From the NCBI RefSeq assembly GCF_006345805.1, contig NC_043010.1:50158001-50222000 (forward strand): a DNA stretch of 64,000 bases. The letters are read 5' to 3'. Shown in pieces: positions 38,601 to 41,600 of this stretch. Numbering within the stretch: the first letter of the stretch is position 1; every line of letters starts with the position of its first letter. A program made the position numbers and the translations under genes. Source of the stretch: Octopus sinensis. Its lineage: Eukaryota. The notes beneath the pieces were generated by a model that worked only from the letters and a program-made list of their open reading frames with translations, had not been told where the DNA came from and did not search any database.

Positions 38601-41600
38601 TTATATATATATATATGACAAAGTGAAGTTGTAAGATACCGCACGAGTGGAAATATATATGAAAGAAGGTTTGAAAATGCAATTTTAAAAGGTGTTTATT
38701 AACTTGACCGGTTTCACTTTTTTAGAAAGAATGTCAAAAGTAAAATGTAAAAGCTTTGTAAAAACTTTGTTGTGTCGTCACAAAATATTACAATACATAT
38801 ATAAATTCTTTGATAATAATAAGAAAAATGTTAAAACAGTTTACAAGGAAAAATCTTGAGAAAATATACAATCATACATACATACATATATATATACATA
38901 TATATATACATAATATATTATATATATATATATATATATATATATATATATATATATACATATATATATATATACATATATACATATATATATATATACA
39001 TATATACATATATATAATATATATATATATACATATATATATATATATATATTACATATATATATATATATACATATATATATATATATACATATATATA
39101 TATATATATACATATATATATATATATACATATATATATATATATATACATATATATATATATATATATATATATATATCTATATATAGATATATATATT
39201 ATATATATATATATATATATATATATATATATATATAAGACTTCATTATAAAGTCATCGTATACAACACTATTCATAGAGAATGGAAACTATTGCTTGCA
39301 GTTCAAAACATAATTGTAGACGATGCTATACATGCAAATATCACAAAAAAAAACACAGTTTAAATACTTACTGAAGTAGGGACTGTGCCTGTTAACTTTT
39401 TGCAAAGCTAGACAAAAAAATAAGAGTTTTCACATTAATGTTACTGTGTAGATGCATGCAATATTTTAAAGGTAGTATAAACAAAGTTTTTACGCAAACG
39501 TATGAATGCATATACATGCATTCATACGCACATGATGTTTTTGCTTCACTTTTAACACGTAATACTGAAATAGTGGAGAAGATATGATATTGCTGTGGGC
39601 TCGCCTTAGGCAAGAAGTTAAAATTTTTTTTTGTCTATGACACTACATGACCCTAAGTAAGGCATGTGTAAAATTTGAATGAAATTGGTTGTGTAGTTCT
39701 CAAGTTTTAGGGATTCACACAGACAGACAGACAGACCACACATTCTCAGTTTTATATATATATATATATATATATATATATATATATATATATATATAAT
39801 ATATATATTATTATACTAGCAGTATCGCCCGGCGTTGCTCAGGTTTGTAAGGGAAATAACTATAAAGCATTTTTAGAGAGTTATAGCCAAAAAATAGCAA
39901 AAAAATGGAAAAAAAATTATGGTAATTTTTTTGAGAGTTAAAAAAGGTCGAGTTGTGTCCCCTAGACAGTCTGTGGTTTGTGTTTCTGATTCTCGACCCC
40001 ATGTCGAATTTATCGATTTTTTCAGAACTGGGGAACTTTTCAAAATTTTCGCTGCGTTAGTTTTGAATTATGACATTGGGCTATGTGGTGTCAAGTTTCA
40101 TCAGAATCGGTTGAAAGCCGTGGTCAGGGTGAGGGTACAACCAAACAGACACACAGAAACACACACAGACAAACTGCCGTTTATATAGAGAGAGATAAAG
40201 ACTTCATTATAAAGTCATCGTATACAACACTGCACGTAGAGAATGGAAACTATTGCATGCAGTTCAAAACATAATTATAGACGATACTATACATAAAAAT
40301 AACACAAAAAACACAGTTCAAATACTTACTCCGGCAAGACTATTTCCTGTTAAATCTTCGCAAACCTAGACAAAAGAAAACATTAACAGTTTTCACATTA
40401 ATGCCGTTGTGTAGATGCATACAATATTTCAAAGGTAGTATAAACAAAGTTTTTACGCGAGCATATGAATGCATATACATACATGCATTCATACGCACAT
40501 GAATACACACAGACACATATATAATTTATATACATAATAAAAAAAAGAATAAATGCGCCCTTTTAAAGCCTAGGCAGGTTCATGGGTCCGGTTTCCTGGC
40601 TTCAATGGCGTATGTGTTCCCCAGCTGGACGGGACGCCAGTCCATCGCAGCGTTACTCATTTTTGCCAGCTGAGTGGACTGGAACAACGTGAAATGAAGT
40701 GTTTTGCTCAAGAACTCAACGCGTCGCCCGGTCCAGGAATCGAAACCATAATCTTACGATCATGATGCTGACACCCTAACCACTAAGCCACGCACTTCCA
40801 CACATATATATATATATATACAGGAGTGGCTGTGTGGTAAGTAGCTTGCTAACCAACCACATGGTTACAGGTTCAGTCCCACTGTGTGGCATCTTGGGCA
40901 AGTGTCTTCTGCTATAGCCCCGGGCCGACCAATGCCTTGTGAGTGGATTTGGTAGACGGAAACTGGAAGAAGCCTGTCGTATATATGTATATATATATAT
41001 ATGTGTGTGTGTGTGTGTGTGTGTGTGGTGTGTGTGTGTGTGTGTGTGTGTGTGTGTGTGTGTGTTTGTGTGTGTGTGTCTGTGTTTGTCCCCCTAGCTT
41101 TGCTTGACAACCGATGCTGGTGTGTTTACGTCCCCGTCACTTAGCGGTTCGGCAAAAGAGACCGATAGAATAAGTACTGGGCTTACCAAGAATAAGTCCC
41201 GGGTCGATTTGCTCGACTAAAGGCGGTGCTCCAGCATGGCCGCAGTCAAATGACTGAAACAAGTAACAGAGTAACGAGTATATATATATATATATATATA
41301 TATATAATATATATATATATATATATATATAATTATGTATATATGTATATATGCTTGTATGTATATATATATATATATATATATTATATATATATATATA
41401 TACATATACATATATTATGTATATAAAAGAAAATATGACAAGATAGAAAATGCTAAAATAATTTTATCACGAGCAACGTTTTAGTACCGGTTTCAGCCTT
41501 TGCGACTTTTTCAACTTAGAGTAAAGCCTGAAAAACAATTAAATTGTGGAAAAATTAAATGAAATGTTTTTTTAAAAATATTTCCATAGTTTTCAAATAC

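Follow-up and report, generated by a model that had tools for sequence, protein, structure and literature searches.

Two 36-nt exons in a 64,000-nucleotide stretch of the Octopus sinensis genome (contig NC_043010.1, positions 50,158,001 to 50,222,000; this whole stretch is called the window, and positions are those of the window unless another locus is named) are very probably true coding micro-exons, used in tandem in a secreted-type ferritin gene and forming an exposed insertion in the loop between helices B and C of the protein. These exons, named A and B in the order of the gene, lie in two copies of a block of about 300 bp, and they differ between the copies far more than the intron duplicated with them, an excess for which positive or diversifying selection on the exposed loop tip, with a core x-C-x-x-L-T-G kept, seems the best explanation and, on balance, a probable one. 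The gene model itself is already public; the dynamics of its micro-exons appear to be undescribed.

Two micro-exons in a duplicated block of a ferritin gene

The window corresponds to O. sinensis CM016872.1 (identity over 42,323 bp). The first ferritin exons were located by tblastn with a human ferritin H probe, which matched minus-strand ferritin exons on either side of the duplicated blocks, and the remaining exons were placed by hand; a database search with the conceptual product identified the gene as that of XP_029644988.1 (P0001), a "soma ferritin-like" protein of 208 aa encoded on the minus strand, which matches the window by tblastn in all seven coding exons, the micro-exons A and B in series included. 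These matches, together with the Pfam domain PF00210, bear out the assignment to a ferritin gene made in an earlier reading of the DNA letters (the sequence-only reading). For XP_029644988.1 a single RefSeq isoform is listed, and it contains both micro-exons; the O. vulgaris model CAI9733130.1 (P0003), from a locus collinear with that of O. sinensis (~99% identity, about 1.0–1.3% substitutions), likewise holds A and B, with a single S>P change, in B. The sequence-only reading had left open tandem or mutually exclusive use; the two gene models point to the former, as both join A and B in series rather than using one exon per transcript, and mutually exclusive use also disagrees with the two small tandem exons that are ancestral in the relatives. 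The micro-exons account for 72 of the 624 coding nucleotides, and the other five coding exons, of 77–147 nt, are ordinary ferritin exons (Table 1).

The block that carries the micro-exons was recovered in several ways. A repeat scan aligned positions 39237–39350 with 40198–40311 at 91% identity and 39414–39525 with 40377–40488 at 88%, and blastn over the whole block gave 84.8% identity in 309 columns, the copies being direct and the only two in the window. Both micro-exons are bounded by ...tttgtctag on the acceptor side and by GTAAGTATTT on the donor side and are open in phase 0-0; on the gene strand, the 6.35-kb interval that separates the large exons on either side has three GTAAGT sites, two of which are the donors of A and B. 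The earlier claim of a block present twice, each copy with an intact 36-nt exon of phase 0-0, is reproduced by the repeat scan, the blastn alignment and the boundaries alike; the two peptides had been listed in the order opposite to the coordinates, A being the upstream exon in the gene. The residues kept between A and B are those of the x-C-x-x-L-T-G core only.

A transposable-element origin of the block was considered and ruled out: there are 2 copies in the 64-kb window, and in 70 kb of the locus of a paralog (described below) it matches only at two homologous micro-exons. The spacer between the copies (39536–40197) is made of simple repeats and dispersed elements; its part 39750–40197 recurs at 92% identity in another place of the O. 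vulgaris locus (L001 33139–33587), positions 39713–39808 are similar to 31016–31112 and 22187–22286, and in every copy the block ends adjoin (TA)n or (TG)n runs.

Small symmetric exons for the loop throughout the family

Relatives were collected by an exhaustive HMMER search, in which the close ones were few: a paralog in O. sinensis and O. vulgaris (P0002, P0004, P0005), a third Octopus paralog (P0010, P0156), proteins of Argonauta hians (P0007) and of a Logan-assembly transcript (P0008), a fragment from O. bimaculoides (P0009) and, more distant, a chiton protein (P0015). All of them have a Cys-containing loop insert, and at the mapped loci the insert is always carried by small phase 0-0 exons between the exons for helix B and helix C, which measure 39 + 39 nt in Argonauta, 36 + 45 nt in the O. 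bimaculoides paralog and 60 + 51 nt in the chiton Liolophura; the two found in Argonauta and in the O. bimaculoides paralog answer the proposal of the sequence-only reading to count micro-exons in other cephalopods. In O. sinensis itself, the paralog XP_029645065, which lies on the opposite strand at a distance of 230 kb, has six, of 36, 18, 33, 33, 33 and 36 nt, and its isoforms X1 and X2 differ in that one duplicated 33-nt micro-exon is skipped in X2. In the Logan contig the tandem loop stands within one uninterrupted open reading frame, and the contig therefore represents a spliced mRNA, while the O. bimaculoides fragment P0009 joins exon 3 to a peptide resembling micro-exon A, TCEDLKTSLKS. 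Small symmetric phase 0-0 exons for the loop insertion are, judging from these comparisons, ancestral in molluscs.

Two types of loop exon can be told apart by their flanks, family 1 (...ctattgcag, an exon beginning xxD-I-C..., then gtaagtattaatgat) and family 2 (...tttgtctag, an exon beginning (I/L/V)-C..., then gtaagtatttaaa), and these match, respectively, the first and the second of the two small exons in the chiton and Argonauta genes. Family 2 includes both A and B, and their blocks align with micro-exon mF and, partly, with micro-exon mB of the paralog; no family-1 relic (xxDIC...) was found in the window by blastn of four family-1 units or by a motif scan, and the gene therefore lacks the first-type exon and has the second type in duplicate.

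Two further observations concern the paralog. Its 33-nt duplicates encode SDDCKHLYSAK (L002 48923–48955) and SDDCKHSCPAK (L002 49815–49847), and the former exon is skipped in RefSeq X2 and in the O. vulgaris model, an annotated alternative use of a recent duplicate. Its 18-nt micro-exon, ICLDKN (L002 47141–47176), is a shortened family-2 unit, in which the ancestral donor now reads CTAAGT and splicing uses a GTAAGT newly arisen within the former 36-nt exon, so that the exon was halved by donor shift.

Against this background, the ways in which tandem use of A and B might be mistaken can be weighed. The two exons could be alternative, either mutually exclusive or independently skipped cassettes, with several loop isoforms of which the database form is one; all four combinations of A and B keep the reading frame, because both exons are of 36 nt and phase 0-0, and the skipped 33-nt exon of the paralog offers a precedent. 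This is nevertheless very unlikely, given that the single RefSeq isoform and the O. vulgaris model have both exons, that the donor of each is a consensus GTAAGT and the acceptor of each follows a good pyrimidine tract, and that the relatives carry two small exons in tandem, which place a Cys pair in the loop. Still further down the scale, and scarcely credible, is the idea that A and B are chance AG...GTAAGT open frames in a duplicated intron, taken into the models by prediction software: no transcript-derived copy of the exact protein is on record, but the paralog has micro-exons that are homologous in exon and flank alike, Argonauta, O. bimaculoides and the chiton have small exons that agree in position and phase, an insertion in this loop is already known for the protein family, and the 18-nt exon and isoforms of the paralog would hardly have been called without transcript support. 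Some points do weigh against tandem inclusion: the joining of A and B comes from gene models and not from reads, the O. vulgaris annotation and the O. sinensis proteins may not be independent, and no Logan contig encodes exactly P0001 or P0003. A word-index protein search with the peptide of the exon 3–A–B–exon 6 junctions gave no candidates, and literature searches for the accessions found nothing. Genuine micro-exons in tandem remain by a wide margin the most credible account of A and B.

The insertion in the B–C loop of a secreted-type ferritin

The ferritin domain PF00210 covers residues 38–195 of P0001 (E = 1.3e-19; 71 bits, cutoff 24.5), and 213 ferritin sequences of the PDB match the protein at E < 1e-10. 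In the alignment to solved ferritins, residues 38–97 correspond to helices A–B and residues 137–206 to helices C–E, so that the 39 residues 98–136 stand opposite a B–C loop of ~19 residues. An AlphaFold2 model built on a 49-sequence alignment (predicted local distance difference test, pLDDT, 91.8; predicted template modelling score, pTM, 0.83) gives the four-helix bundle and a short E helix, with helices at 34–62, 69–95, 132–160, 164–194 and 199–207, and places the insert between helices B and C at lower confidence (68–84), with a short helix at 114–124. Together A and B add 24 residues, with one Cys each, in the middle of this loop. The earlier proposal that they encode a surface loop is thus upheld by the alignment and by the model, since in ferritins the B–C loop faces outwards from the 24-mer shell, at the two-fold axis.

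The ferroxidase residues are kept (E47, Y54, E81/E82, H85, E147 and Q178, equivalent to E27, Y34, E61/E62, H65, E107 and Q141 of human H), their columns being invariant or nearly so in the 49-sequence alignment, and by its residues the ferroxidase centre is predicted to be present. The leader encoded by exon 1 has, as judged by inspection only, a basic n-region, a hydrophobic core and small residues, and no Rfam family, the iron-responsive element (IRE) included, reached its gathering score anywhere in the 64-kb window, 12 kb of which lie upstream of the ATG, the transcription start being unmapped. The secreted or yolk ferritins of molluscs are described as having a signal peptide, a mid-loop insertion of ~40–42 aa and no IRE (PMC10799875; PMC6351634; both cite von Darl et al. 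1994). From its alignment, the octopus protein has the loop insertion that marks this group, and with the putative leader, no detectable IRE and this insertion the micro-exons therefore encode the hallmark insertion of the family.

An N-V-T sequon at the end of exon 3 (42139–42147) directly precedes the micro-exon insert; in the paralog the corresponding position reads N-I-S, and Argonauta and the Logan protein have N-I-T and N-F-T, respectively, inside the first micro-exon. Sequons beside or in the insert are consistent with an exposed, secreted loop. There is also an extra Cys31 (51763–51765) at the start of the mature protein (SAANSY-C-LDK), common to the six-micro-exon paralog and not present in the proteins of Argonauta, Logan or the third paralog, and with it the number of Cys becomes odd (31, 108 and 120). 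These Cys may form disulfides, either as a staple within the loop or as a link to Cys31 or to a neighbouring subunit, and the loop may serve as an interface for a receptor or a ligand.

Divergence of the exons and of their flanking introns

The comparison of A and B was made with flanks of 130 nt upstream and 135 nt downstream. The exons differ at 15 of 36 positions (41.7%) and the flanks at 28 of 257 (10.9%; Fisher p = 1.8e-5), and the most mismatched 36-column segment of the 293-column alignment coincides with the exon (scan-statistic P = 0.0013, with the exon borders unused). The sequence-only reading had claimed that the exons evolve faster than the adjacent introns while length, phase and Cys are preserved, and these figures substantiate it; its own counts, 15 of 36 ungapped exon positions and 7 of 93 intron positions (39241–39333 against 40202–40294), were obtained again exactly. 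It had also cautioned that compensating indels in the 3' half could inflate the exon count; the gapped alignment of the two exons adds no indels, and the 15 of 36 is therefore not inflated in this way. Compensating indels are likewise ruled out by an ungapped three-way comparison with the paralog exon mF.

The differences in the A/B pair are distributed unevenly, with 11 in the 3' 16 nt and 4 in the 5' 20 nt. Nei–Gojobori estimates for A and B give 0.63 nonsynonymous (dN) and 0.55 synonymous (dS) substitutions per site, compared with a flank divergence of 0.118, so that dN is ~5 times the flank value (p = 4.6e-5). The excess is found again in other pairs, as in A and mF (exon 39%, flank 17%; p = 0.006), mA and mC (51.5% and 12.6%; p = 3e-6) and mC and mE (36% and 9.6%; p = 3e-4), and is not found in mC and mD, the youngest pair; some family-1 comparisons with mD are distorted by a 60-nt insertion in its downstream flank and are not relied on. 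The flanks of A and B differ from those of mF by ~17% substitutions (77–78% identity when gaps are counted), and other non-converted intron of the two paralogs has 76–88% identity; the A/B flanks are thus no more conserved than such intron and behave like ordinary intron. Between O. sinensis and O. vulgaris the block flanks differ by about 0.8%, compared with 1.0–1.3% for the surrounding intron.

The fast evolution extends beyond the loop. Between the paralogs, omega (dN/dS) over the helix exons is 1.06, and the helix-C exon is more diverged than its own flanks (37% vs 24%); the whole mature protein is, by these measures, fast-evolving. The sequence-only reading had not recognised this wider pace, nor the loop as the known insertion of molluscan secreted ferritins, nor the age and family-wide reach of the micro-exon arrangement. 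In the O. bimaculoides fragment, TCEDLKTSLKS differs from the O. sinensis A peptide by about 5 of 11 residues and an indel, and exons 2–3 by 11 of 74 residues (the model is truncated), which hints at fast evolution of the loop between species.

The cause of the exon excess

In this gene the ancestral first small exon (xxD-I/V-C...) is absent, and the second type (I/L/V-C...) was tandemly duplicated with about 130 nt of intron on each side, possibly by unequal exchange in microsatellite-rich surroundings. The coding 36 nt have since taken on, per site, four to five times as many substitutions as the intron copied with them, nearly all of which alter an amino acid. In the reading proposed here, selection would favour change at the exposed loop tip, with the Cys, the exon length and the phase apparently held by structural and splicing constraints; the A/B pair would represent the extreme of a family-wide fast evolution, gain and loss of loop micro-exons. 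This selective reading is favoured because the excess recurs in independent exon pairs and peaks exactly on the exon, because the changes are almost all amino-acid-changing, and because the flanks behave as ordinary intron; it stops short of proof because dN/dS is powerless in 36 nt, omega is ~1 gene-wide and gene conversion is active.

Several of the figures weigh against selection. With 9 synonymous sites to count, the exon has a dN/dS of only ~1.1, and its synonymous differences, too, exceed the flank level (3.5 of 9; p = 0.02), which fits a non-selective cause as well as it fits multi-hit codons. Between O. sinensis and O. vulgaris the two micro-exons have 0 and 1 changes, and the omega of the whole coding sequence is ~0.96, from 8 nonsynonymous and 2 synonymous changes, and could reflect relaxed constraint. 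The earlier suggestion of diversifying selection is thus plausible but short of proof; the comparison across Octopus species that had been suggested as a check gives an omega of ~1 from only 10 substitutions for sinensis and vulgaris, the two closely related species with full orthologous loci. Gene conversion, finally, is demonstrably active in this ferritin family.

The observations on conversion are as follows. Exon 1 and exon 3 with their flanks are 97–99.7% identical to the paralog 230 kb away on the opposite strand, in patches at 51444–52421 and 41728–43292 of the window against L002 9478–10420 and 40516–42423, and the flanks of exon 3 differ from the paralog by 1 substitution in 300 nt; the other alignable intron and exon segments of the two paralogs have 76–88% identity. 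This mosaic looks like recent patches of gene conversion between the paralogs.

It is on this ground that the leading competitor of selection is built, a clearly less probable account though one that deserves weight, in which the exons are about neutral under relaxed constraint and the duplication is much older than the divergence of the flanks would indicate, the flanks having been kept unusually similar by intragenic conversion or by constraint on splicing signals. The conversion patches of exons 1 and 3 agree with it, as do an omega of ~1 both in the helix exons of the paralogs and in the comparison of sinensis with vulgaris, an excess of synonymous exon differences over the flank level, and the great age of two-small-exon loops. 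The conversion tracts would, however, have to stop at both exon borders, or else selection would have to remove converted exons, which again amounts to selection for diversity; the A/B flanks are as diverged from mF (about 17%) as ordinary non-converted intron, special constraint is not visible in the ~0.8% between sinensis and vulgaris, which is near the surrounding 1.0–1.3%, and A and B share flank family 2 instead of representing the two ancestral exon types. The concentration of differences in the 3' 16 nt (11/16, near saturation, vs 4/20 in the 5' 20 nt) could also reflect one or a few complex mutational events in one copy, such as a multi-nucleotide replacement, a short patch converted from an unsampled paralogous micro-exon or compensating frameshifts, and the cluster does hold further ferritin paralogs, sampled only in part, as possible sources. 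We consider such an event improbable, since the gapped alignment has no indels, A, B and mF are roughly equidistant in the 3' half (11, 9 and 7 of 16), no donor is identifiable, and the family-1 micro-exons of the paralog show, independently, the same excess of exon over flank divergence. Selection on the loop tip remains the preferred reading of the excess.

Gene structure and surroundings

The features of the gene and of the duplicated block are collected in Table 1.

Table 1. Coding exons, block copies and spacer of the O. sinensis ferritin gene, in the order of the gene (window positions).
Feature	Position	Strand	Content	Support
Coding exon 1	51762–51855	-	MDNNSK...SAANSYC + 1 nt; hydrophobic, signal-peptide-like leader	tblastn with P0001, 100% identity; boundary gtaagt
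Coding exon 2	47895–47971	-	helix A	
Coding exon 3	42139–42285	-	SHYFERSD...KTPNVT; helix B and start of the B–C loop; ends in phase 0 with the N-V-T sequon	
Upstream copy of the ~300-bp block	40198–40502	-	micro-exon A, flanked on either side by about 130 nt of intron	
Micro-exon A (4th coding exon)	40330–40365	-	36 nt, phase 0-0	in P0001 and P0003
Spacer between the block copies	39536–40197	.	repeat-rich: (TA)n runs, dispersed repeat elements	
Downstream copy of the ~300-bp block	39237–39535	-	micro-exon B with flanks	
Micro-exon B (5th coding exon)	39372–39407	-	36 nt, phase 0-0	in P0001 and P0003
Coding exon 6	35684–35788	-	ends ...TTSDHE; end of the loop and helix C	
Last exon, coding part	29533–29664	-	LKYFIAHE...FDQWF + stop; helices D and E	

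The stop codon differs between the sister species, the protein ending ...QWF-TAA in O. sinensis (29533–29540) and ...QWFYQH-TAA in O. vulgaris (L001 31955–31970), where a 1-nt deletion relative to O. sinensis affects the stop codon. Two adjacent minus-strand open reading frames (137 and 164 aa; 33448–34511) lie in a ferritin intron and resemble remnants of mobile elements, and neither region gave a Pfam match; positions 21576–21675 are an assembly gap of 100 N. Further ferritin-domain genes adjoin the secreted-ferritin paralogs in O. bimaculoides (L006 1–1334), Argonauta (L003 15068–15763) and O. sinensis (L002 66211–70437), and octopods therefore carry a cluster of such genes.

Implications

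The loop insertion has been known since the 1990s, and this locus shows that it is encoded by small symmetric exons whose position is conserved from chitons to octopuses and which, in octopods, are duplicated, lost, shrunk by donor shift and sometimes skipped, and outpace the surrounding introns. This provides a concrete genetic mechanism for a variable outer surface on a rigid and ancient cage protein, it marks the loop as a likely functional interface of extracellular ferritins, and it offers a clean, small case in which the acceleration of an exon can be gauged against a neutral reference duplicated along with it. As a system it is of no new kind, since duplicated exons and secreted proteins that evolve fast are both well known. 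A bolder idea, which we regard as speculative and probably wrong, is that octopod secreted ferritins carry, on the outer face of the 24-subunit cage, a variable, Cys-stapled peptide encoded by an array of micro-exons that duplicate, diversify rapidly and can be skipped one by one. A cage would then show each peptide 24 times, paired at the two-fold axes, the ferritin shell would act as a natural multivalent display scaffold with the loop as the recognition element (for receptors of oocytes or other cells, or for pathogens), and the repertoire would arise from gene duplication, exon gain and loss, and splicing.

Comparison with known systems

The closest likeness is to the molluscan secreted or yolk ferritins of Lymnaea stagnalis, Biomphalaria glabrata and a chiton, with which the octopus protein shares a putative leader, the ferritin fold, the insertion in the middle of the B–C loop and the lack of a detected IRE; the Cys-containing loop insert is shared with the chiton protein P0015 and the other relatives. 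The insert has 24 aa here, ~40–42 aa in the snails and 63–74 aa in the Octopus paralog, and the ferroxidase residues kept here are reported to be replaced in the Cryptochiton secreted-type ferritin (PMC6351634). The loop insertion is reported to have no homolog in any other protein (PMC10799875), its exon structure is not described in PMC10799875 or PMC6351634, and no assigned function or origin for it was found in the literature. Full-text searches returned nothing on micro-exons or duplicated exons in ferritins, nor on an accelerated evolution of their loop.

The micro-exon genes (MEGs) of schistosomes encode secreted proteins partly on very small symmetric exons, with in-frame skipping, exon duplication and accelerated evolution (PMC4350168; bioRxiv 10.1101/2023.06.21.545858). 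The octopus gene resembles them in encoding a presumably secreted protein partly on very small symmetric exons that can be skipped without a frameshift, and it resembles still more VAL-6, a composite gene with a MEG-like portion, in which a gene for a conventional domain contains a run of tiny symmetric exons. In MEGs, however, most of the coding sequence is in micro-exons, whereas here only the loop (2 to 6 micro-exons) is so encoded, in an otherwise ordinary ferritin gene; the symmetry is shared (36 nt, phase 0-0), and variant transcripts are annotated for the paralog only (X1 and X2). MEGs are reported as restricted to platyhelminths, and there is no sequence relationship between them and the octopus micro-exons.

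For conotoxin genes, one study describes coding regions that evolve faster than the adjacent introns, with Cys kept while the residues between them change and introns rich in simple repeats (PMC3862624). The mature-peptide exons of conotoxins are similar to A and B in that the exon outpaces the intron, the Cys are kept and the introns are repeat-rich. Accelerated exons with conserved introns are also known from snake-venom phospholipase A2 (PLA2). Unlike both, the octopus case concerns two tandem copies within one gene, and paralogs, and units of 36 nt, in which codon-based tests therefore have almost no power, and nothing indicates a toxin or venom role.

In arrays of the Dscam type, tandem duplicated exons are spliced in a mutually exclusive manner. 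A and B are similar to these in being adjacent duplicated exons of equal length and phase; the annotated products include both copies in series, and the duplication therefore lengthens the loop instead of offering alternatives.

The insect ferritins Fer1HCH and Fer2LCH form secreted shells stabilised by disulfides (PMC4783870). The octopus protein carries additional Cys, in the loop and at the N-terminus of the mature form, for which disulfides are here a matter of prediction, and the subunit organisation of the insect ferritins is different, with an H + L heteropolymer. Insect secreted ferritins are not known to have a micro-exon loop. Taken together, the comparisons point to the octopus protein as a member of the molluscan secreted ferritins and not of the MEG or conotoxin families.

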